Positions 1,751 to 50,464 of a stretch of DNA of 64,000 nucleotides are shown here, one piece after another. The position numbers and the translations under genes were made by a program. Origin of the DNA: Monocercomonoides exilis PA203 (taxonomy: Eukaryota; Protista; Preaxostyla); contig LSRY02000009.1 in NCBI GenBank assembly GCA_001643675.2, positions 620,001 through 684,000 on the forward strand. The letters are read 5' to 3'. Each line of letters opens with the position of its first letter. Position 1 is the first letter of the stretch. The notes below the pieces were generated by a model, which worked only from the letters and a program-made list of their open reading frames with translations, was not told the origin of the DNA and made no database searches.

Positions 1751-2168
1751 CCGAGAAAATGGGTTGTTTTCTTCGTTTTGCTGCTCAAAAAATATCCTTT
1801 TTTGTTAATATTTTTCATTTCACAATTTTGCAAGCCATTGAGCCTTTTTTGTCTTTTTTTCACTAACTTCTTTGGAAAGCAACAAAGAAAAGAAAGAAAG
1901 AAGGAAGGAATCACAAATGGTTGTTTTAAATATTTAGTATTCTTGAAGAAGATGAAAAAGAAGATGAAATATGCCTTGAAGAAATCAAAAAAACTCTGCT
2001 TTATTGAATCTGAAATGTGAAAAAAAAAACAAATCAAGAAGTGGAATAAAGTTGATTTTCGAAAAAATAAAATAAACTTTTCTTGAAAACAGAAAAAAGA
2101 ACAAGTATTTTGTTCAAATCAAATGAAGTTCAAAGACAAAAACACAAGATGAATCAAAAAGCCAAGAC

Positions 2169-2513
2169 TCAGCAATAAACAAAATAATCATCAATATATT
2201 CAACTAAAAATGATTCATAGAATACTTTTTTAATCTTGCAACAGCTGAATCTGATGACATAACCTTCGTATCCTTCTTCTTCCATCTTTTCATGCACTTT
2301 TCTTTTCATCTCTTTTCGTTCTGTTTCTTCGTTTTCATTATCTTCCTCTTCTTTCAATCGATTTGAAATTTCAATAAAGAATTCCAAGCAATCAGATGTT
2401 ATTTCGTCTTTCAACGTTGGTCGCTGAATCTCATTCAAAATGAGATCAGCTGCTCCACTTTTCAGAAAGTCAACAATCGTCACGGATCCTCCAAATGTTG
2501 AAATAATAAATAT
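2169..2513 (-). pseudogene. C-terminal half of a family gene split by the 16.5-kb transposon
   Basis: VDFLKSGAADLILNEIQRPTL...MEEEGYEG. Joins in frame to the 18997+ half when the element and one ATAT are removed. Confidence 0.92.
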
Positions 2514-2535
2514 GGGACATTATTTTCGAAATCAT
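2514..2535 (+). repeat. Left TIR GGGACATTATTTTCGAAATCAT
   Basis: Exact reverse complement of 18975-18996. Confidence 0.95.
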
Positions 2536-3739
2536 AAAAAATTTCGGGGGTTGTTTTTTCTGAAAAATGAATCCTGATTTCTGCTTTATAAACTCAAATA
2601 TCGTTTTGGTGAGCAAAAATATAAAATATTGAATTGATATTTAATCTATTTGTTCATTATTTTTTGATAGTTTATATTTTTTTGAAAAAGATCATTTGAG
2701 GAATAATTTATTTCACATTTCAGAAGATGGACTTTTTGTCAGCTGTAAGTGAATGGATAATTGTTAATGAATTTCAATAAACAAGTCAACTTCACGAATG
2801 TTTATGTTTATATGCACGAAGGAAATGTAAATGCATTATTATTTTCGTTGATGCATGATTGTTTGAAATATATTATTCATGACTCACAGCCCTGAAAGTT
2901 TTCTAAAAATAACATGGAAACATTATTTTTTAAAATTGATTCAATAGCCTAGTATCATGTTTTTCGAGTTCATAACAGCTTTTAAACTTTTTTTGTTATT
3001 TCTTTGACAACTGAATTATTAAGTGAAATTGATTGGTTCTCTTTTTGAATTTCATCGATCTTTTTTATTTTTTGAACGCTAACAAATATTTTAACAAAGA
3101 ATAGTAATAGAATTACCCTCATTTGTATTTTCATGAAAAAATTTCTGAAGTTTTTTCAGATGTGGAAATCACGTTTAATGCATATCATAATGAGATTTTC
3201 ACTAATTGAGTTACCAACAAGTTTAATTATTAACAAAATCAAAGTTATCTATTGCACAAAAATCAAAGAATCGATCACAAAATAGTCAAAGACAGTTTTT
3301 GTTTGTTTGTTTTCCTTATATGACATTTTGAAAAGTTTTATTCGGATAGAATATTAATTTTAGTTATGTTCAATTCATATTTTAGTTTATAGCGAGTGTT
3401 TTTTTTTATAAAAAGGTGATGGATTCATTTGTTTTTAATGTTTTATAATAATATTATTGGAGATTCAAAGTTCAAATAAATCATATTTTGTTCATGAAAA
3501 ACTTGTTCAACACATATGGTTGATAATTTTTTATAATTACTTTGAATTTTGCGATGTTGTTCAGGATTAACAATTGTGATTTAAAAATTGATTCGATTCA
3601 ACGATCCTTCGAGGAGAAGATTTTCGATATTATTTGGGTAGCTTTCAAAAAAAGTCGTTTGTTTTGTTTTCTTTTTCCTTTTTTTCTTGTGAAATTTAAC
3701 TGTCTCCATTTTCACGTTCATCTGATGAAACAACATGAA

Positions 3740-6700
3740 AAGCTGGCTATTGACTTGAAAGATTTTGTTTTATGTTGAGGTGAACATTCAATCACATCCT
3801 TCAAGTTTGATTTTGAAGAAGTTGTCGAACACAGGCTCTAAGCTTGATCAAATGATGAATCTGTATCAGTTGAGAATGTTGAAGAAATTGATTGCAAAGG
3901 TGTCTTTTTTCATGTTTCATCTTCTTTTTCATCTTCTTCAACCTTTTCCGATGTTTAATCAAGGATCTAATCTGTATCTTTTAAGAGAACATATTCTGTC
4001 GATCCACTCTCAGATTGAAGATGCTCTGATGATTCTGAATGCTCAATATTTGTCTCAAATTCCCTCTTCTTTATTATCTCTTCATTCTTTTTCTCAGCCT
4101 CTCTCTGCTCTCCTCCATTGCTCTTCAGGAGACATTTCCATCGTCACCATCTCAAATGCCTTTGGATCTTTTCTGATGTTGTCATTCACAATCTCCTTGT
4201 ATTTTTTCGCTTCATTCTTCGCCCTCCTCCACCGAACAATAAATATTATTGAAACAATCAGAACAATCAACAGTACCACAACAAGCACAATCACAATCAA
4301 CAACCAATAGGATTTCCCTTCTTTTCCTCCTTCAACCACTTTATCATTTCCAGTCTTTGGTTCTGTTTTGTTCTTCAGAATCTGTGGTGAAGTTGAAGCC
4401 AATTGCTTTCCAAACAATATCATCACAAACACCTCTGTTTCATCTGAAGCCAATGAAATATTTTCTGATGGAACTCTTCCAATCACCTCTGTTTCTGAAA
4501 GATAGCTATATTTCTCAAACTGATATGTCTCAACCAACTCCAAATTCCCAGTTTTTTATTCAAATCTGAATGACAAGTCACAGGGCATAAAAAGTGATCC
4601 CTTGAATTTCACAACAATGTTGCTTCCATTTTCACTGATTGAAACCTCTTCCAATTTGGGAATGAAAAATGGAGATGGTCTTTCAGCCGCTACCCCTTCA
4701 AGTGTGCATCCATCATAAAGAATCCAAAGAGAAGAATTCCTCTCTTGTCCATCTCCGCCTTTCAAACTGGAGATGGTCAATGAAGCAGAATCCGAGCAAA
4801 TAATGTTTCTTCTCATCGATGGATATTTTTCAATGAATGGATTGTTGCTCAAAAACTCTCCTTTCTCGATTTTCACATTACCAGAAGATATGGATAATCC
4901 GCCTAATGAAGAATTCGAAATTGTTATGTATTTCATCACTAACGAAGTATTTGATGAATGAACAAGCAATCCATTCCATTGACAGATATCTGTCATTGCA
5001 TTCAAATTCTCAGTTTCATTTTCTTTCATAAACACTCCTTCAAGCTCACACATGTGCATAGAAACATCCTTTGTATTGCTTATCTCCACGATGTTTTCTT
5101 TATCAGAGCGAGAAACGCCTTAAAACAATAACAACTGCAAAGAACTGCATGAGTAAATGATGAAAAAACATACAGAACAGAAGCTCTTTCTGATTTTATC
5201 GAATGGTTGTTGAATGAAGCAGTTCCAAATGAAATTGAACTCAAGTACGAATCACCAATTTCAATGATGCAGTTTTCTTATGATAAAACTTCATCTGTAG
5301 ATACTCCGTTTCATGCAACACTTCCACATTCGCGAAGCACAATAACTTTTCTTTTAGATTAATTCTTTTTCGGCTTTCCATTCGTCAACAAAATCTGATC
5401 TCTCCAACGCAGAAAAGAAGGCTTCTTGAATGAAAACATCTTCCCTGTGAAGTTATCAACATGCGAAATTCTAAGTTTGATGTTCAACAAAGTTGATTTC
5501 GGTAAAGAAGGTCGAGCGCAGTCAGATCGAACAACTTATGAAAAATTACCAACCAAAAGAGAAAGTCGAATACTTGCATCGCGAATGACTGATCAGTGGA
5601 AATACTAAAATGATTGACAGAAATAAAATTTCGCATTCTTTATCCAAGCTCTCTCTCTCTGACGTTGTGATGATTCTTTCTCAGTCGTTGGTGGTAGTTG
5701 AGTTCAAGAATTCAAAAGCTGATGAAGGATATTGAAGAGAGTGGATGCTTATATCTTGAACGCTTCACACACCAAGAAAAACAGTTTGCTCCATGTCAGT
5801 AGTTGAGAGAAACACGATGGAACGATATGTTTCACTCCCACATTTAGCGACTCGCAAGGTGCATTGAACTCTGCACATTATTTGATGTCTGCTTGTTTGT
5901 TTACATTCATAGACACAAATGTTATCTCTCTCCGATATTTCATAATTCTCATCAGAAGATTTCTCCTGCTTCAAACGAGTCTGCTGTGCATCCCCACATT
6001 GCCAGCTCTTTCACAAATGGTGCTTTGAAAAAAAAGGTATTGTTTATCTGTAATTTGTGTATCGATTGAGTGGCATCGAACATAAACATCTCTCCCTCTC
6101 AATGCAGAGTTGTCTCTGAATGTGATATTTGACAGAACAAAATTCAGAGGCTTCTCATCCATTGAGGTTCATTCCAGAAATAGTCGGCCTCCTCTTCCTG
6201 TGGTTGAGCAGAAGCATTCAGAAATCGTGCAAAATGAGCAATCGAAGCTTCCTCCCTCATTCAACACACAAAACATTTCTCCTCCCTTTCCACACCTCAT
6301 TCCCCCACATTTCTTCATCGTTGTGTTTCGTACAACTATCTTGGTTAGCTGTTTGTTGTAATTTCTTATGATGGGAATGCCATCTGTTGTGTACTGGGTG
6401 ACTTCTTCGAATATGCTCAACTCAATAACAACATCTTGTTCTGCTTCATTTCTCTCTTTCCCCAAACTCTTTGATATCCTCAATCCGCTTGCTCCTTCCA
6501 ACTCAATATTCTTTATCGTCAGATTTTTAAAGTTCAATATTGTTGTTGACAGAACAGAAATAACATCTTTTGAAAAGCAAAGTGATTGCATTGACACAAA
6601 TTCCAACGCAACTGTTCCTTCATCTACCATTATCATCCTATAATGAGTCAGTTCTTCTCTCTCATCTCCTTTTTTGTGAAAGAGCAGTCTTTCAGAGTCA

Positions 6701-7030
6701 ACAATCCTTCTCTTGAGCCAACATGCTTCAAATAACTGACTCCATCTGTGAATGAAGAAAGAATGACAAAATTTATCAATTCAAAAAAGGTGATGTTCCA
6801 TATCTTCATTACCGCTCCTTCTCCTTAAAGCAATTATGCGCATTCAAAAGTTCCCACGATGTTGTTATCATTCGATTTTGTTTCAGCAACGCTAAGATCC
6901 AAAAATATCGGAGTACTCTTTTTCCAATGATTCTAATGTTTCTTTCGTATCAAATTAGTTATTTGTGATAATTCTCATTGAAAATTTATTGATAAACACA
7001 GATAATGATAAATAAAAACAATGTCGACAT
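3740..7030 (-). pseudogene. Degenerate pectin-lyase-fold/polymorphic surface protein with a C-terminal TM helix (element cargo)
   Basis: Broken ORFs 6169-6636 (GKGGEMFC..STTGRGG), 5971-6162 (FRDNSALRGRDVYV), 4556-5089 and 4094-4543 (TM WLLIVIVLVVVLLIVLIVSIIFIV followed by RWRR). Many frameshifts and stops. Confidence 0.75.
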
Positions 7031-7119
7031 TGAAAAAATACATAAACGAAAACAAAAATATTGAGTTACAAACTTCAAACGAGGAATTTTGTTTGTTTTG
7101 TAATGAGTTAAGAGAAAGT

Positions 7120-7217
7120 CCACCCTGGGAGGCTGATTCTGGACCCAAAGCCTTCAAGGGATTGTACTGGACCGGTCACAGCACAATCCCAGGACGGAAT
7201 CAGCCTAGCCCCATTTT
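7120..7217. other. GC-rich nested stem-loop (candidate structured RNA or cis element)
   Basis: Outer stem AGGCTGATTC 7130-7139 / GAATCAGCCT 7197-7206. Inner stem GGGATTGTACTG 7158-7169 / CAGCACAATCCC 7179-7190. Followed by a T5 run on +. Confidence 0.55.
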
Positions 7218-7349
7218 TGCATAAAAGCAAAAATAAGGGTACCCAGATAAAAATGCTTTACGCATTTATATCTGAGCTTGAGCAGCAGACATTTCAAAAA
7301 ACTCATCAACAAAACAAACAAAATTTCATAAAAACACAACAAAAAATAC

Positions 7350-10300
7350 TCAAATATCATTAGTTGGATTAAAGAACAATAATTTATCAAGCTTTTCCCT
7401 CTCTTTGTACATTCTTTTAGTGTTTATTCCAGGTGACAAAGTGGTCGATTTATGATAATACTCCTTTGATGTTTTTTTGGGGCGCTCATCTCTTTCTCTT
7501 TTTTCTCGAAATGCTGTTGCAAATGTCCCTTTTGAATTAAAAGGAGATGAAACCGATCGAAATACTTTATTTCCGCGCTTTTCATAAAATAAATATGTCT
7601 TCAAAGAACTGACTACCATTTTTTTCCATAGAATTTTGTTGGATGGATTGTGCCTGTTATTTATCAAAAGACATAATAAAGATGTTTCAAATAAAAATGC
7701 AAGTGAATCAAAAATGAAAACAAATAAAAAGCAAACTTCAGAAAGTGACGGTGAGTTTTGGCACAATAGGAAATATTATTGTCATCAAATGAACCTGTGA
7801 GATAGGAATTAATTTCAAAGAATTTTATAAGTTCATCGATATTGCAAATTACAGTATTGTTATCCAATTTGTTATTAATGCATTGCGAAAGATGCCCGAA
7901 CTCTCCGTCGCACTCGCACTTTCCGTGCTTTTCGCAAAAGAATGACAAAGATATTGTTTTATCCTTTGCAAACGAAGAATTGTTTGAAAGAAGAAAGTGC
8001 ATCAGTTGAGAGTTTCGGAAATGTGATCCTGTATCACACATGAATCGAAACACTTTCTTTTTTTCAAAAATCGGATTTGATAAGACTTGTTGCAAACATT
8101 CTATTGTGAACTTGTAGTCATGAGACAAAACGTTGGAAAAAAAGTTGAAAATGTGTTTCTCTTTGTTTTCGTTTTCATCTTTCAAGTACGCTATAACACA
8201 GAATTGAGACACTTCAACTTTGTTGTAAAAATCTCGACTTATTTGATTCTTTCTGATCGGCAAGGACCAGTTTTCTTTGTAATCAAACAATAGAAGAGCC
8301 TCATCCTGCGTGAAATTATTTTTTAAGTGTCGAAAGTATTGTTGTTGATTATTGGCCAATATGCGGTGTTTTTCAATCAGTCGTTTCGTTGCTTTCTCTT
8401 CATTGTTAAGTTGTTCAGATCGCTGGAATAAAAGTTTCTCCTTATTCTTTAGTGAAGAGTACACCTCACACAAATCACAGACGTCCGTTCTCCTCGTTGC
8501 CCTTTTTATGCGTCGGGTCCTTTTGTAGAATTGACTTTTTGACATTTTTATCTTTGTTTCTTTAACAAACTTTTCATATAATTCTGATTTTGTCGTATTG
8601 ATAATCCTGATAGGTTGCTTTGAACATTGAAGATTTTCTTGTTCATGTGAAGGAATAAGAGTTTTTCCAATTTCTCTGACGTCTGTGTTGTTCACTGGAT
8701 TTCTTGTCGAAAATGATAGTTTTGAAGAATCGATTGATTCATTTGGAACATGTTTTGATATGTTGTTTGGCGAATGATTGTTTGAATGAATTGTTTCAAA
8801 ATTATTGGACGAAGCATTTTTTGGAGCATTTGTGTCTTTCCGATCTGTTGGAGAATGATGAATATGCTTATTATGAAATGAAATGTCAGCAGAATTGTCG
8901 CTATTTTCATCCGAAGTGTTGTTTGATTTTGATTGCGATAATAAAGAGAAGGACGCTGATGAAACCTGAGAATAATGAAGTGGTTGGGTTATCAAAGATA
9001 ATTCGTTTGATGATATATTTGTTGGTGAAGCGAAGTTTTTTGATATTGAATGATGTGGATGAAGTGGTTGAACTCTATTTTGCCTTTCTTCTTCATTGCA
9101 AACTTGATAAGAAACATCATCATGAAATGAGAGAGAGTTGTGACAGCTGATTGACTGATAATAATCATTCGAAATATGATAGTCAAGCAAATTAGGCGAT
9201 AAAATATCTGTAACAATTTCGTCAACATTGCTGTCAATTTTTTTATACACAGAAAGGATCGGATGCGATCCCTTGTTAATATGCGTTTCAATTACGGTTG
9301 TTATGCTATCACGAATAGGCGAAATTTCATCGTCATTACACATGCACCACCCACTTAAATTTAGCTTTAGAAAATTCGAACACTTCTTACTTTGCACAAT
9401 TGAGTAAAAATGACCATGTTGATTGTCTCCTTGATAAAATAGAAGTCCTATCAGTGTGTAGTTAATTGAGCCTCTCTTCAAATCTCTATCAACAGAAATG
9501 GAATAACTGTCTTTTTTGAAAGACAACGTCTCGTTTATTTGGAAATTGATATCTCTTTTATTTCCTGCAGGTTCCAAAGAAACCGAAAGAATTTGAGGAA
9601 ATTGTTCCATTTTCAAATGACTTAGTTGAAAAGTTTCTGACTGACAATGCTCACAGAAAGCGTATCTGTTATTCTTGTTGCTGGTTTCCATTTTGAATGA
9701 AGTATTAAATGCTTCGGTGCAACTGGATCCGACTAGTCGTATAATTGGTGTCGACTCGAATGGACCATTCACTGAGCAATGACATTTTGAACAATGTCTT
9801 GGAAATGACAAACTTGTGTTCACCTGATACGCAAAGTTAGGAATGATTATTGATAAATCATTGAACAAATCCAAGAAAGTTTCATAGAATTCTTGCTGCA
9901 ATCCTTGTCTCAGTTTATGCCTTTTTTCAAATTGTCTTAGAAAAAATGGTGACCATCTTTGTTTCAATTGTGAATTCTTTGTTTTGACAATAATTTCCTC
10001 TGAAACGAGATGTAAAAGATTTGAAAAATAAGAAGTGAACGTTCCATTTCGAATGGGTAAATCTGGACATTGAACAATAATTGCTCGAAATATTTGAATT
10101 TGTGAAGCCAGATAACAACTGTTTCCTAAATTTGTTAAGCTGAAAATATTTGCTCCTTCATCTTCGTTTTGGTTATCCTGAGTGACAAGCTCCTGATCAA
10201 TAATCATATTCTGATCCGAATGTTTGTCAAGCACATCCGTCATTATGTCAGAGGAATAGTTATTAATTATATCTTCTTCTACGTCCATTAATATGCTAGG

Positions 10301-11312
10301 ATCAAGATTTTCCGTAATTTCTTGATATTCCTCATTCTCGTAATAATTCTCTATCGGTGAACTTTGACAATGACTTTGAGAAACATGATAATATTCTCCC
10401 AGAAGATTTGTTTGTGTTCTTGAAATGTCGTGCATATCTGATAAGCTGTTGTTATCCATTGGATGTGTTTCGATGTATGTTCCAGAGATAATATTATTCT
10501 CTTCAAAATCGCTATTTTCTAGAAAATAATCTCCCAATGGATCAATGTCTATTTCCATGTTGTCTTCCCCATTCAATATCGCGAAATCATTGACATTTGC
10601 TAAATTTTCCTCTTTGAAGAAAAAAAATATTTTTAAAAATTTTCATTTTCTTTTCATCAAAAATTCATAATATTGCAAACTATTTTTGGAACTGATGATT
10701 CTTCGTGATCCTTCAGATGATTCAGTCGAATTGGCAGAAATAAATTCTGAAAATCTCTTTTCTTCGTCGTTGCTGAGTTCTTATTTCAAATTTTCAAAAT
10801 AGTAAATATTTTCATTTAAGATACAAAAAACAAACTTCTTTTTGATGGAGGCATTTTAGGCTTTTGAGCACGAGATATTTCTAAAGATGAAGAAGAGCTG
10901 CTTTGCTTCGAATAATTGTAATTTCCTTGTGTGCAGTGGAATCCAAAGTCCAACAGCTGATGAAATGAATATTCATGACACACAGTCTTGAGTATTGTGA
11001 CTTTCGTATGAGCGTTATCTTCTGTATTGGATGCCGATGCAAGACGCATTATAACGTATTTATCCTTTTCTTTATGTTTCAGTGAATGTTTATTTTTAAA
11101 CAATGAAAACATTTATTTCAACAAAAAATCATACCGTTGAATATGTTTTGCAACTCGGAAAACAATTTCTTTCCTTTGTTTGTGTGAATGAACATGTAAG
11201 TCAAGCAGTTAACTATATCTTCCCCTGATATGCCATTCAAATATTCCCAAGCAGCATTGCACTTCTCGCTTTTTCTTGATGGAGAAAGCAAAGAAAATTT
11301 CTTTTTTTCCAT
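7350..11312 (-). CDS. Sola2-like DDD transposase with an internal USP (peptidase C19) domain; 5 exons, ~1229 aa
   Basis: Exons 11312-11135, 11069-10836, 10779-10681, 10611-7737 and 7653-7350 are joined in frame by GT-AG introns of 65, 56, 69 and 83 nt. Transposase motifs: TDVCDLC, FDYKENW, CDTGSHFRN, FFCEKHGKCECDGEFG. USP boxes: NLGNSCY, QQEFYE, GHFYS, WCMCNDDEI. Start codon uncertain (frame open to 11354). Confidence 0.85.
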
Positions 11313-12729
11313 TTGGAGTTCAGAAAAAAATGTCTCAGCAAATGAGAGGTCCAATTAAAGGGAATGGTTGTATTATTTATATTTCATTCTATGAATTTCA
11401 TTTCAGATTGCAAAGAAGTGTTGCAGTTATTCAATCTCATTTTACGTGTGACTTGATTTTCACAACAATATTTTCGTTAACTTTTTGTGTACTTTTGAGT
11501 CAATGAATAATTTTTATCAATTCACTGCTCGATTCATCTTATTTCATAATAATTAAAAGAAAACAATTGCCGATTTATTAATCACATGTTTTCCAAAGCA
11601 AATGACATTTACGAAAACCGTATTAATCGCATAAGCAAACAATCCGAAGAAAGAGAATGATAACGTTCATTCGATGTTATGAAAAAAGAAAAAGTTTTTA
11701 TTTGACGATGAGAGTGACAAAAAAATAAATAAAAGGAAGTGCTTCATTCAGACTGCTAAGCTTTCACGAAGTGTGCACTGAAGAGAATTTTAGAATTCCA
11801 TAAGGTTACTGAAATAGCTATTTCCTATTTTTTATAGACGATACACTTTTGTTTTCATCTCATCCTTCCTCTTTATATGAGTCATTTTTCTTAACATTTA
11901 GTCATTCAACTCCAATTTCAGTTGATTATGCATCAGTTCTCAAATGTTATCTTGGAATGCAAACAAACAAAAAGAAGATTTTGTTGAAGCACTCATTCAA
12001 GTCAGTTCTATTGAAGAGAATACTTTTTCTTTTTTTAACATCGTTTTCTCCAATAGCAAAATATTCTTCATTTTTCACAGAAATTGATGTTTATTCATCA
12101 TTATCAACAATTACTTAATCATCTCTTCCTCTTTTCTTTCTCCTTCTTCTTTTCTTCGTTTTCTTTCTCCATCTGTAACTTCTCCATTGAAACCGCTAAC
12201 TTTCTGCAGCAGATGACCGGCTTGCACTACTTCATCTTGATATAAATAAATTTGCATTCTTTCAAATTTTGACGTTCTTTTGTCAAACGTTATTGAATGA
12301 CCAAGAGTTAACATTTTCCATCCTCGAATTACTGTTGTCACAAGTTGGTTTGAGATCATCAAGCACATAAATCAACTGTGCAATAAGCTGCAAGCAGCTC
12401 TCTTTCTTGAACAATGTCTTTTGATGAACAGAATTCATAAGCGAAAAAAAAAGAAAAACGCAAAATAAGAGAGACATGAAAGAAATTTCTTTTTCTTTGA
12501 CAATAAAACAATCTCCTTCATTTCTTCTTCCCTTTTCAATATCTCTTTTCTTTTCAATTTTCACCATTTCTATCAACCTTTGATAGAAGTTAGCTCCTCT
12601 CCACTTTTCTTTCTTTTTGCAAACAATTTATCTTTTCCTTCTTCCCATTTCAATTTCTTTCTGCATTATCTTTAAGTTCCCTTTAGTCGACTTAAGTGTA
12701 CTCTGAACAATGCTCACTTTTGAACATTC

Positions 12730-14140
12730 AACACAGCCAGTTTCCCCATGTGAACATCACAATTGAGCAGGTGGGAATCGAAGAGACGTTGATTCCATCC
12801 AATGCCCGCTCAACACACTTATTGACTTTCATTTGCTGAGATTCTGTCAGGAGTTTATTCAACTGAGACAATCTTCGTTTGTTTGGATGACATACTCACA
12901 ATCGTTCTTGGGGATCGAGAGTGCAAACAGCAAGAGAGAAAGGAAGGCGCAGAAAAGGTTCATCAAGTGTATGCAAAAGCAGATTGAGATTTCAGAGATA
13001 GCGTCAGACATTTGCAATATGAAGAATTATGGAGATGACATCCTGCCGATATTAACGTACTCTGCGTTTGGCTCAGATTAACAAGGCGTTTTTGAAGGGG
13101 TTGAAGGAGAAGAGTGTGTTTTGCCAAAGAAAAAAAATTGAAGATGAAAGAAAATGAAGAAGAAAAGATGAAAATTTGATTGAGAAAACAATTGAAGAAA
13201 ATATAAAAGAAGGAGAAAAAGAAGAGGAAGAGTGTTATCAGCAACATTAGAAGCAGGCAGATGCATATTCAGATTGAGTAAGAAGAGCAAAGCGCTGATG
13301 GGGCCCCTTGGCTGTCGTTGTCGATGATCGAGAGTTGTTTGAAGGTTCATTTTGCAAAGCGAAGCAGAACACTATGAGCAGCAATTGCAAAACTTCCATT
13401 GTTGTCAATTGCCGAAGATGCAATCTGAAACTGAATGGGAAAATGTTTTCACAATATGTGTCTCGAGTGTCTCTGAGAAGAAGCCAGATTCGTCATAAAT
13501 TGGTGAAGTTAATGAGTTTTATGTGATCACTTTTCAAATTGTTTCATCTTTGTTGGATTCGAAAACTTTTGCAAATATTTCTTCTTTTTCAGAAATAAAG
13601 AATTGGATTGTTCTGCGCTTGCTTCCATCTCTTTTGCTGAATAAATAATAAAAAGAAAAAAGCTTGAATAACTTGCCATCAGAGGCAGATTAGAAGATTG
13701 ATTCAAACAAAGTTGCTCATTCAGATAATTGCTGAAAAGAAAATTATATCAGAACATAATTCATTTCAGCAGAAATCTCCACAATCCAACATTGTTGCAG
13801 AAGAAGAATCAGATCATGCAAAGCAGATCTGTTCACCTTCAATACTTGTTCTTTCAAGTCCAAATTCTGAAGCACAATTGCAGCTTCAGGCTGATCAACA
13901 CTTTTAACCAGTTAATAATGCGGAATTATGATATTTGCAGTTGGCATTGTTTCATTTTTTTAAATCTCAGTGTGCTCAAATATTTCAAGAATCGAACTTC
14001 AATGAAGGGAAGTCTGACCGATTTGATATGCGGAAGAATTTTTTTGAGAGTATCGATGAAACAAACAACAAAGATATATAAATCTCTCGACAAAAGAGCC
14101 TGTTTTCCTCGATCTTTCATTCCTTTGGAATTTTAACCAT
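12730..14140. pseudogene. Degenerate, unidentified host-gene fragments inside the giant element
   Basis: Short protein-like frames (e.g. 12833-13081 +, 13698-13907 +) interrupted by stops. No confident family. Confidence 0.3.
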
Positions 14141-14970
14141 TTTTTAACTAAAAAGAAAAAAAAGAAATATAGCTTTAAAGCAAAACTGCTCTTTCTCAAT
14201 TCTTTTATCTCGTCATTTTCGAAATCACTTCATTCGTTTTCGCTTTTTCGAAAAGATAATGGAATACTGAAAATTTCTTCTCATTTGACTTTTATCAAAT
14301 TTATCAAAAAATCAAAATTTTCATTTAAAAAATAGATCCAAAGCAAATAGACATTCCATCACAAAAGATACACCAAAGAAACATTGTCTTCAAAAGTAAT
14401 TCTTTGTTTAATCAAGAAAAGCTAATCAGAAGGCATTCAACAGAAAACGGAGATCAAATCGGATTATTCATTTATAAATTGAAAGAGGCTTTGAAAAAAA
14501 AAGAACGTTGAAGTTATTTTTGTTAAAAACGGATGGGTTCCAAAATAGTCTTCTGCATGCTTCACTGCTTCGAAACCACTGCAAATTGAAAAGATGAAAC
14601 GATAAGGGAAAGCGCTTTTGAAGAAAAAGCTTATTTGAAGAGAAATTATATGATCTTTTGGAGCAGATCGGATTCATGCATGTTGAAATCGGAAAGTTGA
14701 AGAATTAAATGTTTTTAAAGAACTTTCTGATATAATCGAAGAAATGAAAATGGAAAATTGCTTTCAACAATGAGCTTTATTTTCATTGGATGCAGAAACC
14801 AAAAGAAATGAGGAAATTAAGAAAAAATGTTTTTATGTGATATGAGTTTATGATATATGAAAAAATAAGTGTTGATATATGCTTCAGTTGAAGAAGTGAT
14901 GAAGTCTCATGTATTTTTCTATGACATGGAAAATGGTGAAAATATGAAAATGGAAGGAATAATATAGAAA

Positions 14971-16865
14971 TCAGAAAAAGTTATTATTTCCTGTTGTTTT
15001 TGTATCAACTGCGCTGAAGGTGAGTGTTTGAATGGGAACAAATATTGAGGTGAGGAGGGTGAGAGATGCGTCTTGGGGATCTGTCATGCGAACAAGAGCG
15101 AATTCAATTGTTTTGCATGGAGTCTGTTGGGGTCTGCCACAGGCATCTGTATTGGTTCCGTTGTTAGAAACGATTTTGAATGTTGTAATGAGAGGAAGCC
15201 ATTTGTTGAACTCAACATCATCAGCAGTTCCTGCATTCCAGACTCTTTTTGATTCTGTTGTTGAACCGCATTGATTGAATGGAGATTGGGTGATGCTGCT
15301 TCCACTGAAGAATACATCGTTTCCTCTTCCATTTGTGGCTGTGTTTCCATCGAAGAAGCAGAATGTGATGAAATTTATTCCATTCATCCAATTTGATGTT
15401 CTTGTGCAACACAGCGCAGTACCACCATAGGAAGTTGGATTTTCGACTTTGTTGTTGATGAACTGGCACTCTTGGAGCAAGCACTGTTTTGGTTTTTGTG
15501 GTGGAAGCCAATTGAATGTGACTGCTCCAGCTGCATCACCGCCAGTATTTGCAACACATACACAATTTTTGAACAAAAAATTTGCATCTGGTGGCATGTC
15601 GTCAAGGGCAAAAAACCAACCAGTTCCACACCAACTTGTAATTGAACAACTTTCCACTCTGTTTTCTGAGAATGTCCAAGCAGAATTTGTTTGCGGATAC
15701 CTGATGCAATTCGCTCCTCCATTAGCCGCAGAACAACTGGTGAAATTGGATTTTGCGATATCAACTTTTAACAAATAATCACAATATAACGCTCCACCAT
15801 GATCACTGGTTGAACATTTGCTAAATGAGCAAGATGAAATTGCGAGATTGGCATTTGTATAAGAAACATAAAGTGTACCTCCAGCAGATCCATTTCCAGA
15901 ATTTTCCCATATGCACCACTCAAAGCGATGGCTATTTAGATCAAAAGAATCGAGTCTTCCAAGTTTCACTCTTTGAGATTCATTTCCAATGTGAACTTCA
16001 TCAGCATTTGATAAAGAGCGTGTTTGGTGGAGGAAAGAGGTGTTGAAGGCAGAGAGAGAGGTGGATGGGCTGTTGAGGGAAGGGAGGATGGCACCATCGA
16101 TGGGGTTGTGAGTGTGGAGGAAGATGGCTGAGTGGATAGAGAGGGAGGAATGAAGGGAAAAAGAGGGGATTGTATTGGTGTTGGTGTTGGACGTTGAGAT
16201 GAAAGGATTGAGTGAGTTTGAAGGAAGAGATGGAGAAGATTGAAGGGATTGAGGAGAGGAGATGTCGGAGAAGAGGGTGTTTGAGAGATGGAGATTGAGG
16301 TGGATTTGGATGTGGGGATGGGATTGGCGATGGATATGGAGAGGGGAAGAGGAAGAGGAAGAGGAAATCGAAGGGGAAGGGGAAGGAGAAGAAAAAGAAG
16401 AGAATGAGGATGAGGATGAGAAAGACGAAGGAGAAGGTGAAAGGGGATGGAAAGGGGGAAGGGGAAGAGAGGGAAGAAGGAGTAAAAAGGAAGGGCTGGA
16501 TGAGGGAGATGAACGAGGAGAATGAGGAGTGGGGGATGGAGAAGGAGGAAGGGATTGGGGAGTGAGCATCTGAGAGGAGATTGTTTGGGGTGGAGAAGAG
16601 GGGGAAGGAGAGGATGGCAGGTTGGGGGGTGGTGAGGGAGAAGTTGGAGAGAGCGAGGGAAGCATGGGCAGAGAGGAAAAGTGGAGATTTTGTTGCTGGG
16701 TTGATTTGGTAAGTGGAGGAGCAGATAGAGGCAGCGGAGTGGTGTTGGGCAGTGAGGAGTGGACAACCGCTGAGAGGGATGATGTTGAGATGGGTCACGC
16801 ACAAGGAGGTGTTGATGAGGGAGAGGCTTGTCTGAGCACCACAGATGGGACTGCCTGAAAAACAT
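14971..16865 (-). pseudogene. 5'-frameshifted, 3'-truncated pectin-lyase-fold/adhesin-like surface protein (element cargo)
   Basis: Repeated GG(A/T)-x-FxxC beta-helix motifs (AGGTLYV, FSKCSTSDHGGALY, NGGANCI, YGGTALC), FFDGNTATNGRGNDVF and CGRPQQTPCKTI. Ser/Pro-rich N-terminus with a frameshift near 16800. Confidence 0.72.
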
Positions 16866-17249
16866 TATGTTTTTTTTATATTCTTTGTTTTGTTTTTTCT
16901 TTGAAATGATGAATTTTTAATGAGCGATAATGAAAAAAGAAAGAGATTAAATTTTTCTAAAAAAAAGGAGAATTTTATGTTTCAAATATTATTTTTTTAA
17001 AAAAAATTTGAAAGTCTGAAAACAGTTTTAAAATTACTTTATGTAAAGTTATCAAACTTTATTCAGCCCGCCTCCGAAATAGTTTTCCCATAAAGTACAT
17101 AAACAACAGATTCCAGCAGCGACAACTCTTTTGAAGACAGAAGTTCTGTGTCTAAAAAAAGCCAAAAAAAAAAAAAAAATAAACAAATAATATAAAAACA
17201 AAAAGCTTTGATATTAATATTTGATGTTCAGGAAAAAAAAACGCATTTC

Positions 17250-18760
17250 TTATTTTTCTGAGCAGTGAAGTTGCTCAGAAGCAATATTAGTTGCATAAGT
17301 AAGAGGATGTGAGAAAATATCCTTTCTGCCTTCTTTTTCGTTCTTTTCCGTTTTGCAAAGATTTTCTTCTCCGCCATCTCTTTTCATTGTTGAACTGCCC
17401 AATAGAACCGATTCTTCATTTTTAGTCTCCGTTTCTGATTGGCGATGGTGGTGTATTTTACGAGGCATAAGCGTTCCATTTATTCTTCTGTGGTTCCGAG
17501 CCGAGCGTTTGCGAAGAAGTTTGAGTGTCTCTTGAAGGGAATGCATTTCATTCTCTTCAGAATCAACAAGTTTCGCCTGCGGAGCCGAGCTGCTGCTCAT
17601 TTCTTTACTTCCAAAACTTTCAATAGTTTTGACTTTTGAATTCTCACTTTCTATTAGTGTCTTGCTGTCATCTTCTTTGTCCTTCATTTGCTGCAGCTGC
17701 AGTTGTTGCATTTGACTTGCTTCGTATTCGTGTGAGGAATGCCGAGTGTTGTGATATTTCATTCGAAAACTTTTCTTTGCTTCGTTCTTTCCCTTCTGAG
17801 TTCGTTTCCCTTCTTCCTCATCGAAATAGCTTTCGAATTCTCCGCTTTCAACTGCAGGATGATTGATTGCTTTTCCATAAGATTTCTTCGCAGTTTTCCT
17901 ATTGGCGATTTTGTGTTGTCCAAACACTGGCAGCAATCTTTCTCTTTCATCAACCAGCATAACACGACTGCTTTTGGCTTTCTGCGTCTGCGCTGGCTTA
18001 TCCGATGCCCCTCTCCTCTTCGCCATTTGCGCCGCTGTGCTGCTTCCAGAAGGCTGCGGCTCGTACTTCGCATTCATTTGCTCAATCTTCTTCTTCATTT
18101 CTTCCAGTTGTTGGGCGTGCTTTCTCGTTGCGGCATTCACTTTTTTCCTTCGGCGAGAATATTTCCCTTCATAAAATTCTTCATCATCATCGCTTGTTTC
18201 ATCAGAACTTGGATGGCGTTTATCATCGTATGCTTCTTCTTCATCTTCTTCTTCTTCACCTTTGTTGATTGAATCCTCGTCGTATTCATCTTCTTCATTG
18301 CCACTTTCTGATATAACGGCATCTGAGTCGTTCTTGTCATCAGTTGACTCTGTTGATGGCTCCAGAAGAGCTGCTAACTCTTCTTCGTCCAAATCTTCGT
18401 ATTTTTCCTTTTTCTTCTTCAAAGAAGACTTCGAATTTTTCTTCAGTTTCTGTCCTGAAATGTTCTTCGATTGCTTATTTGGTTAGCTTTTTTTCTTCTT
18501 TGATTCTTTATTTTCTGGAGACATGACACGCTCCAAATTTGCACTGCTATCTTTTAAATTAGAACTATGATCTTTTGGAGAATTATCTGATTGCTCTTCA
18601 CCAACTTCCCTTTCGTGAGCATCTTCTTCAGATTGGCAAAATACACACTTCCATCCCATTCTAGGTAAGAATTGTAATCCAACACATAGCTTGTGAAACA
18701 CTTCAAACTATTTTAACCTAACTTTTTGAAAATTAATAATATACCTCTGTTGCATCTAAT
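17250..18760 (-). pseudogene. 5'-truncated PHD-finger gene with an acidic/low-complexity tail (element cargo)
   Basis: After removing a short intron it reads RCNRVFHKLCVGLQFLPRMGWKCVFC, the second half of a PHD finger. ORFs 18483-18701 and 17250-18422 are in the same frame, separated by one TAA. Confidence 0.65.
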
Positions 18761-18974
18761 TTTCGCTTGAGTAAAATACAAAAAAGAATTTGCTTTTCAT
18801 TTTACATAATTATTTATTCATTGATCAAATATTTTTCTGAAAAAGTTTTGAAAGTGTTTCTTTTTGATAATTATTGAGAAAAAAGTCATTTTTTCTTATA
18901 TTAACTATGAGTTTTATCATATTTGCTCGAATTTTCGCCAACTTTTAACATCCGAAAAATTTCAATGCAGATTA

Positions 18975-18996
18975 ATGATTTCGAAAATAATGTCCC
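18975..18996 (-). repeat. Right TIR of the giant element
   Basis: ATGATTTCGAAAATAATGTCCC followed by the ATAT TSD. Confidence 0.95.
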
Positions 18997-20058
18997 ATAT
19001 ACATAAGCAACCCATGACTATATCACTGTGATTCTCTTTAACTGCCCGAAGTACCTGAACAGTGATTCGGATAATCTCTACAAATTCCTTGTCCCATAAT
19101 ACGCACGAGTCAAAAAGAAGAAAAAACACAATGAGCCATCTCCTGATAATATGCACTTCTTTCATTTCTCTTCCTCTTTTCTCTTCTTTTCTCTCCAAAT
19201 TCACGCATTTTGTCAGCTTTTCCAGTTCTCTTGCAGCCTCTCTCGCAAATAGCAGCTCATCCAAAATAACCTCTTTCAAACTTTTATCTGATAATCTTTC
19301 TATCAAAAAATGCCAAGCTGATTGATAGGCAAGTCTTGTCAAATTGTGATGTTCCTGATGATATTTTATGATTTCTTTGATTCTATTTAAATACAGCTTT
19401 TTCTTAATGTTCTAACAAAAAAAGACAAAAAAAAAAATCAAAAATGATATTGAAATGTTCATACGTAATACCCACTATTGCTCAAAGCCAGCAACGCCAT
19501 TTCAACTTCATGCTTAACTTTATCGCTTTCTTCTTTGTTCGTTGCAACTTTCAGAAGGCAAGGCACACAAACAGAAAGTAATTCTTTTAAAAGATCTTCG
19601 TTATGCAGCATGAGATAGTCTTCGCAAAGATCAACAAGAAGCTTTTCATCCTTTCCTTCATTTTTCTCATTTTCATTAATAATTATCTCTTCAATTCTTC
19701 CGTTCAATGAAGATTTCTCAAAGCTTTGAATGAAAATTCTCTTCAGCCTGGTGCAATATCCAATGTGTTTCAACAACAGAATGACACTTCCAAAATTCAA
19801 TTTCTTTTCATCTATCATTTTAAGAATTTTGTCGACAGTTCTTCTGTTAAAATGGATAAAAAGTCGCTTCTGTCCATTCCATCAATTATTTTATTCATTT
19901 CAATGAATTTCTGTTTCTGCTCTTCCTCATCGCAATCTTCCAGTTCGCAAAACAATTCTTCAAAAACAATGAAATTGGAAAAAATGCAATGAACAAGAAT
20001 TCACTTGCAATAACAATTGCAAGCTATTGAACATTTTTGTGTTGTCTGTCTCCTGCAT
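18997..20058 (-). pseudogene. N-terminal half (3 exons) of the family gene split by the giant transposon
   Basis: MQETDN.., intron, LFCELEDCDEEEQKQKFIEMN..EVEMALLALSN, intron, KYHQEHHNLTRLAYQSAW..ENHSDIVMGCLC, then the TIR. Confidence 0.92.
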
Positions 20059-20229
20059 CATTTTCTTTTTTTAAAAAAATTTGTTCAAGAAAGCAATAAT
20101 ATTTCAGCCATTCACATTAGACCTATTTTAGTTAGAATCAATAAATTCAAATATGTTAACTCAATTTCAATTACCTTCAACTTATCCAAATTTGCTTAAT
20201 CTAATTCGAATTCCCTTAAACTTTTTTTT

Positions 20230-23096
20230 GGTTAAAAGGGCATTTTTATGATCAACACAAAATGATCGCAAGTTTTTGTTTTTGTGCATTTTTCACTCAC
20301 TTTGAATGAAAACTGAACAAAAGATTATGGCTCATCATTAAAAAGAAATGTGTGTGATCAATTTTTAAAAATTTTTGAGTTTTTTCTATCAATTTTACTT
20401 TAATGTGACTTTTTTTATTATTGATGTATTCTCTTTCACATACACTAGCTTTGCATATTGCAACATGTTTTGGATGTTCCATTTTAGCTTTTAAAAAGAT
20501 TCAAATTGTATTTTCTTAAATTTTATCACATTTTGCAATATTTTCATTTCAACTTCAATTTTTATTGGCTATGAAATAACAAAGAATGAAAATGAAGTTT
20601 TTGTATAAAAAATTTTTTCTGAAAAATAAAACAAAATAAAAAATCTTATAATTCTAAAAATTCTTTTTCCTTTTTTTAAAAAAAAAAAAAGAAATGAGAG
20701 AGAAATTTGGAGAATGTTTATTTAAATAAATGATAAAGATGATAAAAGCCTTCATGTGGATATTTGAATACAGTGATTGTTATTTTGTTTGACTATGATT
20801 TTCATTGGATGAGAAAGAAGAAGATCGTGCCCGAGATAAGTTTGAATCTGAAGATGCAGAAGAATCTGATTGTTGAGAAAATAAATGATGAGTTGAAATC
20901 AATTGCAAAGACGAAATTGGAGTATTTAACTGTGGTTGAGGAGAAATTGCCGTTTCATTCAGTGAAGCCTGAGAAGAATATTGTGTATTTATTAGGGGCA
21001 AAGGGGAATTCAATAAAAACTGATTAGATGAAGTCGACTTCCGCAAACGAGTTGATTCCCATTGATCTGGAAGAAACCAAGAAAAAGGGCAACTTCTTGT
21101 ATCATCATCGTTTATTCTTTCTATTTCTTTCAATTTATCTTCATTTCTTTCAGAATTATTGAAATTGACAGTTTTTCTTTTTTCTTTTTCTTTTTCTTTT
21201 TCTTTTTCTTCAGAAGTTGAATCATCATCTATTTCTATTTCTTCTCTTTCTTCTAATTCCAATAATGAATGTTTTTGTTTTTTCTCTTGATCTGGATGCT
21301 TGGAAAATCGTTTGCAGTATGGGTCATTTGATTCTGTTGATTCTTCTAAAAATGATAAATAATGGAAATATGAAAGTGAAAAAATGTTCTTTTCATGCTC
21401 AAAAGAACAATATGGGTGTAAAAACAAAAACAAACCAATTCTTTGGATTGACTTTGAATATTCAAAAGTTGAATTCTCATTTGCAAGATTAAGTTTTTTT
21501 CTTTGTCTTTCTATATACTGCTCGTTCGCTTTCTTTTTCGCTTCCTTTTTTTGATAAAATTGAGTGTGAAGTTCGTTAATAATCAACTCGTTTGCATCGC
21601 AATCTGATTTCGTTAAAGGATTGTGTAAAATGTGAAAATTGGTTAAACAAACTGAAACAATAAAAAAATCTTCAACTGTTTTAATATCCATAGGCCAATT
21701 TCTTCTGAACACAGTAAATAAAGTCTTTAATCGTCCAGAAAACCTTTCTACAATAACCCTGTGCTTCGATAGATATGGTGTTCCTTGGGGTTTTGTAATA
21801 ATAGCTCCCAATTCTGCTTTTGCTCCCATATAGGCCGAGTCTGCCATGATTTTGGAACCTTTGAGATGTTGAGAGAAGGTTGGATAGTGATTTTTGAATA
21901 TTTCATAGTCATGAACGCTTCCTGGGTAAAAATCACTGATTGTGCTGGCTAATCCGTTCTTTGGGTTGACCCCAATTTCAACTTTAACACAGTAAGAATG
22001 ATGTTTTCCACTAAAAAATTTCATTCCATCTGCCAATTTTCCACTTGGCCTGTTAATAGGCACAATTGTGCAATCCAAAATTAGACCAACCTCTTGCAAC
22101 TCTTTGATTCTATCTTTACGAAAAATCAAAAGTAAATTAACAAGTGTATCTTTAAAGTTTCCAACGATGCTGTGTAATAACTGCGTAACTGAGCTATGTG
22201 ATTTGTAAAATGGATAAGTCAAAAGTTCTGTCATTGATGTTGAGCCCAAATGAAGGAAATTGAGTAAAATAAAAAGTTGTTCGTCAATATTTTGAATTGC
22301 CTTTTGCTTTCCACGATGTTGAGGTAACTCGTAATCAAGAAGAAGAAGCAACATATCAAATTCTGTTCTTGTGAAACCTGTCAAGCTGAAAAATCCGTGA
22401 ATGGGATCTTCGCTTTTTTGACAAGCTTTTTCTATTAAGGAATTTTTTTTCTCTTCCGGAGTTATTGGCGTGTGCGTTGGAAGCGTTATTCTTTTTTCTG
22501 CACGCTCAAGAACCTCCAAAAAATTCAATCGTTCCATGACAAATATTTATTTGCAAAATTTCAATTGATCTTACACCATTTTTTGTTCAATCAAATTTAT
22601 GATCGACAAACCAGCATTTGAAGTTTTGAAATTGATTGAGTCATTTTGAAAAAGAATTTGTTTTATCGCATTTTTATCAAACTTATTTCAATTTTGTTCC
22701 ACTTTTTCTAATTGAAAAAATATATTTAAAATAGGTCTATTGAACGAGCACATGTTTAAATAAATGAAATAGTTGAAAAATAATATCTTTAAAACAGGAA
22801 TAAAAAGATGTGCATCCATACGTCCCCTTTTCTGAAAAATCTTTGACAAGTGACAAAAAAGAAAACAGATGTTCAATAGTTTCAATTTTATTGTAATGGA
22901 AGCCATTGATCAATAGTTTTGAAAAAAATAAAATTTGATGATATGAAAATTTAATTAAACCAAAATTTAAGACATTTAAAAAATCATGCGAAAACAATAT
23001 TTTGTTCAATTTTTTTATAATTTTTGAAAATGCCAATTGATAAAAATGTTGTGGAGATTATAAGTAATTGTTTTCCTCTTAAAAAGCGCTTTAACC
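20230..23096. mobile_element. Putative boundaries of the Harbinger/ISL2EU-type element
   Basis: Imperfect inverted ends GGTTAAAAGGGCATTTTTA (20230) and TAAAAAGCGCTTTAACC (to 23096) bracket the transposase. TSD not resolved. Confidence 0.45.
20780..22537 (-). CDS. PIF/Harbinger-ISL2EU-type DDE transposase (DDE_Tnp_4-like) with an acidic tail
   Basis: FSLTGFT N-terminal HTH region, LDCTIVPINRP, FSGKHHSYCVK, YPGSVHDYEIF, MADSAYMG, RVIVERFSGRLK. A probable in-frame intron lies near 21350-21455. Confidence 0.9.
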   Translation of the reverse strand: MERLNFLEVLERAEKRITLPTHTPITPEEKKNSLIEKACQKSEDPIHGFFSLTGFTRTEFDMLLLLLDYELPQHRGKQKAIQNIDEQLFILLNFLHLGSTSMTELLTYPFYKSHSSVTQLLHSIVGNFKDTLVNLLLIFRKDRIKELQEVGLILDCTIVPINRPSGKLADGMKFFSGKHHSYCVKVEIGVNPKNGLASTISDFYPGSVHDYEIFKNHYPTFSQHLKGSKIMADSAYMGAKAELGAIITKPQGTPYLSKHRVIVERFSGRLKTLFTVFRRNWPMDIKTVEDFFIVSVCLTNFHILHNPLTKSDCDANELIINELHTQFYQKKEAKKKANEQYIERQRKKLNLANENSTFEYSKSIQRIGLFLFLHPYCSFEHEKNIFSLSYFHYLSFLEESTESNDPYCKRFSKHPDQEKKQKHSLLELEEREEIEIDDDSTSEEKEKEKEKEKRKTVNFNNSERNEDKLKEIERINDDDTRSCPFSWFLPDQWESTRLRKSTSSNQFLLNSPLPLINTQYSSQASLNETAISPQPQLNTPISSLQLISTHHLFSQQSDSSASSDSNLSRARSSSFSSNENHSQTK

Positions 23097-33400: not shown

Positions 33401-35153
33401 ACAAAGAGATTCCGAAGAAATGTCTTCAACAGCAAAAATTAGTTCAAAGCAAAAGCAAACCAATTCCAAAAGAAAGAATGAAGAAATAAAAGAACAAAGA
33501 CAACAAACTATCAATCCGAATATGGCTCACCAACATTTACAACAGTTTCAGCAGGCGCTTCCATTGCAAGTTTCACCAAAGTTCTTTGAAGGTGGTTTCT
33601 TTCAACTGCAAAAGCCTTCGTGGTTTTCTTCTTCTCCGGACACTTCTGCTTTTGCTTCAACTTCATATACAACTCCAGCCGGAGCATCAATTAGATCAAA
33701 TCAAATACAAATGATTCCATTCACATCAACTCCTTTATTCACGTTGAACCAAAACAGAAATGGAGAATGCAACGGATCTCTTCCAGAGTGGCTGACACAG
33801 CCACTGAAACTGGAGCCGCAACAGATACAAAAATTTGAGGGAATTCAAAAAGAATCCGACAAATTGGAAATTAAACAAGACATCAAACCAGATAATGGAA
33901 GCAAAAATTTTGTTGAAGCTGCACACAAAAAAATTTTAACAGCCCAACAACAACAGCAGATGCAGATGCAACTTTGTCAGAGGCAATTAATGTTTTTGCA
34001 GCATCAGCAACAACAGCAGCAGTTACAGCAGCAAGCGCAGATTCGTTATCCCTTCCAACCTTCTCGGAAACAATGTACTCCTTCCGAGGTGAACTTTCCT
34101 CCTCCGCCTTCGTCTCTTTCTCTTTCTTCTTCTCAGGCGGTGTCAACACAAGAGCAACGCTCAGATATGTCAATTACATCACAGATGACGCATATTCTGC
34201 ACTCTCATGGGTCAACAATTGAAAGTGGTGTGCTGTCCATTCATACAAGTTCGCAATCAAAAAAGCAGAAAGATGAACAAACTGATATAAAAGAAGCAAA
34301 TGAAAACAATTATAGTGCTGCAACTTCTTCTTTTCCGTTGCCTTTATCTTCTCATGGAGCTCTGTTACATTCAAATAAAGCAACGTCAACAACTTCAAAT
34401 AGTTTGGAACAACAACCTTTATCTCAACAACCAAACACCAAGCCATTTCGCTATACAACTTCTCCTCCTCACTTCAGCTCGTTTCCACAAAAGTCTTCTT
34501 ACACTGCAGCTGCTTCTTCTGCTCCATGCACAAGCTCATTCAGTGTAAAGCCGTTGACTTTCTTTCCATCACCACTCATGTCTTCAGTCAATACAAGCAT
34601 TAACAATAATCGTTTGCAACCTTCTTCCTCGTCTTGTGCACCTTCTCTTTCATCAACTTCGTTTTTGCGTGCGCCAATTGCTAATGCAACATTGTCGCAA
34701 CCTTCAATCCCCTTAAGCTCGAAAGCAGCCAACTCTCTTCCTCCTCCTTTATTTAAGCCTCCACTTTCACCATCTTCATTACAATCTTCTTCATTTTCCA
34801 CTTCTATTCCATATGTTTGTAACTCTTATGGTTCATTGCCTTCAATGTTTCAAGTTTCAACAGCTCCTTCTTCATTCACATCTGGAACTGCTTCTTCATT
34901 TTCGCCTTCACAACAACAGCCAATTCAATCGAAAGAACTCATTCCAAAGACTTCGACAAAATCGATAACTTTTGTTGATCCATCTTTGAGATCTGTGTCT
35001 TCTCAAATGACTGTTACTCCATCAACCACTGCTTCATTTTCTTCTTCATTGACATCTTTCAATTCTGATTTTGTTCCATCTTCAGCTGCTCCAACTCTAA
35101 TATTGCAACAATCAGTTTCAAAGCCTTGCTCCATTCAATCATTCATTGCATAA
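27496..35153 (+). CDS. Very large (~2510 aa) Ser/Gln/Glu-rich, probably disordered protein with an AT-hook motif
   Basis: Exon 1 27496-27597, GTATGT..TAG intron 27598-27722, then an uninterrupted in-frame 7.4-kb exon. KKPRGRPKG near 30715 is followed by a basic NLS-like RKKRMKKR. Confidence 0.85.
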
Positions 35154-47648: not shown

Positions 47649-47684
<36 letters not shown>

Positions 47685-50436: not shown

Positions 50437-50464
50437 GGGTGATTTTTTTGAAATCATAAAAAAA
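50437..50464 (+). repeat. TIR-like end related to the giant-element TIR (possible left end of a second element)
   Basis: GGGTGATTTTTTTGAAATCATAAAAAAA versus GGGACATTATTTTCGAAATCATAAAAAA at 2514. Sits exactly at a gene truncation point. Confidence 0.6.

Follow-up and report, generated by a model that had tools for sequence, protein, structure and literature searches.

What kind of element interrupts a host gene near the start of the 64,000-nucleotide stretch of Monocercomonoides exilis PA203 that we analysed (the window; assembly GCA_001643675.2, contig LSRY02000009.1, positions 620,001 to 684,000 of the forward strand), and where does the DNA that it carries come from? We find that window positions 2514-18996 are occupied by a 16,483-bp element bounded by terminal inverted repeats (TIRs). 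The reading that we favour, to which we give a probability of roughly 0.85, is that this element is an autonomous cut-and-paste DNA transposon of the Sola2 type, that it belongs to a large-bodied M. exilis family, and that its cargo would for the most part be a neutral passenger. The assignment of the genome to M. exilis agrees with the nearest protein, MONOS_18616.

The ends of the element are sharply defined. The left TIR (2514..2535, plus strand) and the right TIR (18975..18996, minus strand) begin with GGG and are identical as reverse complements over 22 of 22 bp, and a 4-bp target-site duplication (TSD), ATAT, can be read off the sequence beside each of them (2510..2513 and 18997..19000). 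Perfect 22-bp inverted pairs are expected by chance about 9e-4 times per window, or about 5e-6 times if matching 4-bp flanks are demanded as well, and the termini, spacing and flanks described in a first-pass annotation of this DNA are borne out by the coordinates, the identity and this estimate. The host gene that is interrupted lies on the minus strand, with its 3' half at 2169..2513 and a 5' part, in the region of the last exon, at 18997..19420; its paralogs are found near 24, 36, 42.4 and 49.5 kb. Deleting the element together with one ATAT in silico restores an open frame of 251 codons on the minus strand, which reads VLRAVKENHSDIVMGCLCIFIISTFGGSVTIVDFLKSG, whereas keeping both copies of ATAT breaks the frame (longest, 152 codons). 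The annotation had described the restored gene as aligning without gaps to a paralog, and this is true of the protein, where the alignment with the paralog at 42.4-43.2 kb is free of gaps over 75 residues, from VQV to RLKE (counted by eye), but not of the DNA, where blastn of the empty site against the same paralog (66% identical) opens gaps. A contig assembled from the short reads of a 2016 run spans the left junction, at 2291-2579, with zero differences; the run derives from the same sample and not from a second isolate, and its contig supports the assembly. We note that reads of both 2016 runs cover gene-like regions alone and that the runs may be of RNA, in which case the left-junction contig would represent a read-through transcript that passes from the end of the element into the cut host gene. 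The element at 2514-18996 is real and not an artefact.

The genome search for inverted pairs of the 22-mer that the annotation had proposed as a check finds the exact sequence nine times, with eight of the nine occurrences forming four giant pairs with matching TSDs. One sister copy, C9:387053-403602 (16,550 bp, TSD ATGT), aligns with the window element over its full length at 91.5% identity with no insertion or deletion larger than 24 bp, and another, C13:965879-981018 (15,140 bp, TSD AATT), is 82-85% identical over most of the element. Homology between sisters stops exactly at the TIRs and the TSDs differ among the three copies. Because colinear sisters at other sites carry their own TSDs, the interior moves together with the ends; the whole 15-16.5-kb unit has inserted at three sites and has thus jumped at least three times as one unit. 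Two further subfamilies, represented by copies of 16,988 bp (TSD AAAT) and 14,697 bp (TSD ATAT), have only the core of the element in common, and subfamilies that share the core alone carry different cargo. Five more TIR pairs with a transposase inside, known from coordinates only, span 17,789, 17,966, 14,196, 12,851 and 13,799 bp, so that the ten transposase-enclosing pairs range from 12.9 to 18.0 kb and none is shorter than 12 kb. Some of these spans are inflated, since in one sequenced copy of 17 kb (C91:1871813-1888800) 4.6 kb is a nested TIR element that sits in intron 1 of the transposase gene (positions 4467-9083 of that copy). This nested insert has GGC...GCC ends and holds a fragment of the surface-protein family that also supplied the left cargo of the window element, along with a part that resembles window 39.7-40.1 kb; capture of cargo is therefore not confined to Sola2 in the M. 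exilis genome. The TSDs of the five giant copies are ATAT, ATGT, AATT, AAAT and ATAT, and six MITEs (miniature inverted-repeat transposable elements) show 4-mers made up of A and T only. MITEs of 241-258 bp bear the same ends as the giant copies, TIR-like matches number about 1,590 genome-wide, and the transposase family has at least 109 matches among 420 candidates in the genome.

The core shared by these elements, about 7116-11312 in the window (4.2 kb), consists of a transposase gene followed by a structured RNA, both on the minus strand. We predict a transposase gene of five exons and about 1,230 codons, with eight splice sites that are kept in three copies and have compatible phases. Exon 1 (11135..11312), with a putative start codon, corresponds by homology to the very N-terminus of Sola2 relatives, and exon 2 (10836..11069) to the N-terminal region of Sola2 relatives that lack the inserted protease domain described below; exon 3 (10681..10779, 99 nt) is predicted from splice sites and phase arithmetic. 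Exon 4 (7737..10611), defined by its open reading frame (ORF) and domain matches, would encode an acidic region, a USP/UCH domain, a linker and the Sola2 catalytic domain (about 7737-8701, with D at codons 8284, 8035 and 7909). Exon 5 (7350..7653), whose splice sites are likewise kept in the three copies, would supply the C-terminal part with the stop and matches the C-termini of Sola2 relatives. Exons 1-2, the USP domain and the catalytic domain have ratios of nonsynonymous to synonymous substitution (dN/dS) of 0.04-0.35, the mark of purifying selection.

Several lines of evidence place this transposase in Sola2. A full HMMER search retrieved 815 relatives where word-index protein searches were almost blank, and D140, D223, D265 and an HGK motif are invariant across 60 relatives. 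A model of the catalytic domain (pLDDT 84.8) has an RNase H-like fold, with the DDE transposases IstA, ISCth4 and Hermes as its nearest neighbours. The relative P0072, on Polysphondylium pallidum scaffold GL291006, matches the transposase sequence that the supplement of PMC3627910 gives for Sola2_PPa-1, and the window transposase aligns with P0072 at 26% identity over 256 amino acids (pairwise E 1e-25; library search E 2.8e-19); it is this match to a published transposase that ties the element to Sola2. The DDD triad, the short TIRs and the AT-rich 4-bp TSD agree with this placement, and by the sequence tests that we ran the element is a Sola2 member. Termini of the form 5'-GRG are typical of Sola2. 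The ends are GGG here, GGC in a sister subfamily and TGT in the published PPa-1, and GRG is thus not strict. We also note that another Sola2-like TIR start lies at window 50437-50458, with no partner in the window.

The remainder of the element forms two arms, 4.6 kb on the left and 7.7 kb on the right. The estimate of about 12 kb of cargo in the annotation holds as the combined length of the arms, which is 12.3 kb, though the part that can be traced to host genes is smaller, at about 7.3 kb. The left cargo (3770..6950, minus strand) is a 3.2-kb fragment, broken by stops and frameshifts, of a multicopy host family with 1214 candidates, and about 30 other loci match it with 71-76% DNA identity across some 3 kb. 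A transmembrane helix lies close to the end of the protein, which is probably of a surface or receptor-like kind. To the right of the core lies a spacer of about 3.4 kb (11313..14737) that is present in the three sister copies only and in which we find no coding signal and no frame with a signal of selection. It is followed by a 4.1-kb block (14738..18788, minus strand) that is 85% identical to a host locus, C25:1611615-1615705, and the genome-wide match lists contain no TIR, transposase or RNA match at that locus. Within the block lie the 5' part of a gene for a beta-helix surface protein (14971..16800, minus strand), from a family with 1901 candidates in the genome, many of whose host members are open for 2000-3100 amino acids, and a copy of MONOS_15778 (17250..18480, minus strand; 92% amino acid identity over 98% of 390 amino acids). 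MONOS_15778 has only three matches in the genome, which are the window element, the C9 sister and the C25 donor. The cargo of another subfamily includes a member of the family to which the host gene interrupted here belongs. Judged by these matches, the arms contain host-gene DNA, one block of which has an identified donor. The claim that the element is at once giant, Sola2 and cargo-carrying is thus upheld by the spans of the TIR pairs, the homology to the PPa transposase and the host-gene arms.

How the cargo has evolved bears on whether it does anything for the host. Between sisters the identity is patchy (69-99%), with multicopy cargo at 69-78% and its flanks at 95-98%, and the beta-helix part is a mosaic. 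The beta-helix segment of the window element is 77% identical to host paralogs and 64% identical to its own sister; because the cargo is closer to the paralogs than to the sister, and differs between sisters far more than its flanks do, we take it to have been exchanged with host paralogs. It is possible, though in our estimation unlikely, that the cargo is not neutral and that the elements, under selection, spread and diversify expressed surface-protein genes to the benefit of the host, in the manner of Starships. The beta-helix cargo has a dN/dS of 0.3-0.5 between sisters and remains open for 564 amino acids here, the sources of the cargo are the most expanded families of the host, and unclassified repeat, which makes up 35% of the M. 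exilis assembly, overlaps expanded gene families (PMC8767320). However, synonymous divergence (dS) in those segments is 0.3-0.9, compared with 0.04 in the flanking DNA, which points to conversion from paralogs and makes the signal of selection that of the host. In addition, the left cargo is no longer intact, of the beta-helix gene the 5' part alone is present and both sisters have a stop in it, and the cargo of single-copy origin decays neutrally: the MONOS_15778 copy has a dN/dS of 0.91 in comparison with its C9 counterpart, which contains three stops, and is thus a neutral passenger.

Less probable again is the idea that nested insertions or segmental duplication, and not capture of host DNA, left the arms behind. 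The genome is rich in transposons, and the C91 copy shows that one of these elements did gain 4.6 of its 17 kb from a nested, cargo-bearing TIR element. The subfamily of the window element, however, contains no internal TIR pair, no insertion or deletion of more than 24 bp separates the window element from its C9 sister, homology ends exactly at TIRs that are flanked by different TSDs, and no TIRs accompany the host locus to which the 4.1-kb block corresponds. For later insertions, this explanation is largely refuted. Both outcomes that the annotation had named as fatal to its proposal, that other TIR pairs would all be short and that the interior would consist of later independent insertions, fail to materialise, the transposase-enclosing pairs being 12.9-18 kb long and the interior common to three copies. 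That the structure is a misassembly, or that two ends of an abundant short repeat merely happen to be paired here, as the roughly 1,590 TIR-like matches (many of them from MITEs) might suggest, we regard as negligible given the rarity of the exact 22-mer, its giant pairs, the restored host frame and the short-read contig across the left junction.

If the element is an autonomous Sola2 transposon with passenger cargo, then its transposase would bind the 22-bp ends, excise the unit and reinsert it. Cargo could have been acquired by template switching or gene conversion during the repair of breaks in or near the element, a process that homology to the huge gene families of the host would aid, and the captured cargo may later have been re-exchanged with host paralogs, with most of it remaining a neutral passenger. 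Some points weigh against this account. The exons of the transposase, searched one at a time, are predicted to be joined on the strength of conserved splice sites and phase arithmetic, and their expression is putative. The C25 donor is known by its coordinates and identity only and may be a remnant of an element that has lost its ends. Finally, the nearest sister is 2-8% divergent outside converted tracts, which gives no sign of present activity.

Two components of the core were overlooked in the annotation, whose reading was in that respect incomplete. The first is the USP/UCH domain in exon 4 (about 9251-10159, minus strand), which scores 57.1 bits against PF00443 (cut-off 23.9), has intact Cys and His boxes, and aligns with USP34 and USP21 at NLGNSCY, GHFYS and NDD. 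It is located within the predicted transposase, upstream of the catalytic core and downstream of the N-terminal region, and with its catalytic residues present it is a predicted deubiquitinase. We found no USP Cys box in the other Sola2 relatives that we searched, including the PPa locus and 150 relatives, and our literature search returned no report of a USP in Sola. Proteases of ubiquitin and SUMO are known to be fused to transposases in other lineages, namely OTU or Ulp1 in Ginger1, Ulp1 in MULEs, OTU in Helitrons and Peptidase C19 in XP_001314237 of Trichomonas vaginalis (PMC2836005). Like these, the M. exilis transposase polypeptide includes a cysteine protease of the deubiquitinase type; unlike them, it is a Sola2 protein, with the USP placed after the N-terminal region and before the catalytic core. 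More tentatively than for the steps of transposition and capture, we suggest that the inserted USP might strip ubiquitin from the transposase, or from chromatin or repair proteins at the cut site. Genome-wide there is also a second large clade of USP-transposase fusions, with about 40% identity and many open frames of 1000-1300 amino acids, whose members are mostly without matches to the TIR or the RNA model of the window element.

The second component is a multi-stem structured RNA motif of about 180 nt (7116..7294, minus strand) that begins some 55 nt past the stop of the transposase and was recognised by conservation and covariation. This segment is 84-99% identical among elements whose transposases share only about 55% identity. 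Among six copies, compensatory changes occur at 16 of 52 pairs, which exceeds all 500 of 500 shuffles and every slid control, although the sequences are few and related and the comparison is not to be read as a probability. A covariance model has 59 strong matches in the genome, 58 of which, by comparison of coordinates, lie on the same strand as a listed transposase or USP match and within about 3 kb downstream of it; a further 46 weaker matches of about 140 nt include many that adjoin transposases of a second group. On a contig from the metagenome of another sample, a 147-nt version (2098-2244, plus strand; E 5e-9) sits 59 nt behind a transposase of 41% identity. Metagenome scans yielded no match to the exact RNA pattern and, for the transposase, two weak loci that lack the RNA, and the motif was not found at the PPa locus or in 150 relatives. 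Rfam has no match to 7116-7294 up to E 1, ARAGORN finds no tRNA there, and we know of no paper on this RNA in Sola from our literature search. Comparison by eye with HDV-like, hammerhead and twister ribozymes, SECIS, SRP and RNase P gave no assignment. A role as a Fanzor guide RNA is unlikely, as the genome has no TnpB/Fanzor Pfam match. A pseudoknot between UCCUG and CAGGG is possible, but both strands are invariant, so that covariation cannot support it. We lean towards a predicted cis-acting role at the transposase mRNA's 3' end, in end formation or stabilisation, which would also block read-through into the cargo; self-cleavage perhaps accounts for a third of the weight that we give to such a role. 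Like the proposed action of the USP, this step is put forward more tentatively than transposition itself.

Although the annotation knew of no described example of such an element, Sola2-Fanzor1 chimeras of comparable size were published in 2013, with DFa-1/2/3 of Dictyostelium fasciculatum at 10.3-12.9 kb and PPa-1/4/5 of P. pallidum at 13.6-15.3 kb, all with passenger Fanzor genes, AT-rich 4-bp TSDs and protist hosts (Bao and Jurka 2013, PMC3627910). The M. exilis element shares with these the lineage of its transposase, a size class of 10-15 kb, TIRs of 12-22 bp, AT-rich 4-bp TSDs, a protist host and an organisation in which the transposase part is common and the remainder exchangeable. Where those elements carry Fanzor1, however, the M. 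exilis passengers are host gene fragments that flank a central transposase; PF07282 (TnpB/Fanzor) has no match in the M. exilis genome, in a search that is weak for divergent Fanzors, and the long ORFs of the element are all assigned to something other than Fanzor.

The analogy to Pack-MULEs drawn in the annotation fits in part. As in Pack-MULE and Pack-TIR elements, host gene fragments with identifiable parents are held in a TIR element (transduplication), but Pack-MULEs are non-autonomous, mostly 1-2 kb long and never above 7 kb (PMC6431247), and the analogy breaks down over autonomy and size, given that the window element is autonomous in our reading and belongs to a family of 13-18 kb with a Sola2 transposase, a 22-bp TIR and a 4-bp TSD. 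The long TIRs, 8-11-bp TSDs and non-autonomy of Mutator-type elements are absent here. The comparison with Starships is weak. Fungal Starships have a tyrosine recombinase captain as their first gene, reach far greater sizes and hold adaptive genes that are intact. The M. exilis element is like them in being a sizeable mobile unit with a variable gene cargo, but it is a DDE/TIR element with cargo that is mostly broken and decaying, a Pfam scan of its ORFs finds no tyrosine recombinase, and its mobility gene is the central DDD transposase.

Size alone is therefore not new for Sola2. What does appear to be new is autonomous capture of host genes, together with the inserted USP and the RNA, and our literature search turned up no publication in which Sola carries host genes. 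Every trait but the RNA has a precedent, but taken together, with a large size throughout the family and a donor that can be traced, they make a good specialist result. Eukaryotic cut-and-paste transposons are thought to become less efficient once their cargo exceeds about 6 kb, and Pack elements in nature are small (PMC6431247). Here, despite that presumed limit, an entire family is autonomous, 13-18 kb long and shown to mobilise host DNA that it has captured and whose donor can be traced; its natural large-capacity transposase is a candidate tool. The family may also provide a testable route to gene-family expansion in a genome with so much unclassified repeat, a clean case for asking why transposases retain deubiquitinase domains, and a new structured RNA linked to a DNA transposon. 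A far bolder proposal, which we consider doubtful, is that a Sola2 transposase, a built-in deubiquitinase and an RNA of a new catalytic or regulatory class, also found in Sola2 of other organisms, form a three-part system that tolerates 8-13 kb of cargo and is a main engine of both the surface-protein expansions and the 35% of unclassified repeats.

Lastly, the window contains other repeats and transposase remnants. A 585-amino-acid DDE_Tnp_4 transposase ORF of the PIF/Harbinger or ISL2EU type lies at 20780-22537 (minus strand; E 2.6e-22); the ends of its element may be marked by sequences at 20118 and 22739 that match in inverted orientation over 13 bp, with no clear TSD. A fragment of a DDE_1 transposase (pogo/Tc1-mariner-type; E 3.4e-14) lies at 51777-52754 (plus strand). 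Short inverted-repeat elements at 794-1202 and 1326-1545, with arms of 156 and 69 nt, are probably MITEs, the latter being high-copy by read depth, and at several other loci inverted duplications 1-8 kb long are bordered on either side by 255-bp MITEs in mirror image. Two very long, low-complexity, Ser-rich ORFs lie on the plus strand, one of 2455 amino acids at 27786-35153 (no Pfam match) and one of 1414 amino acids at 44834-49078.

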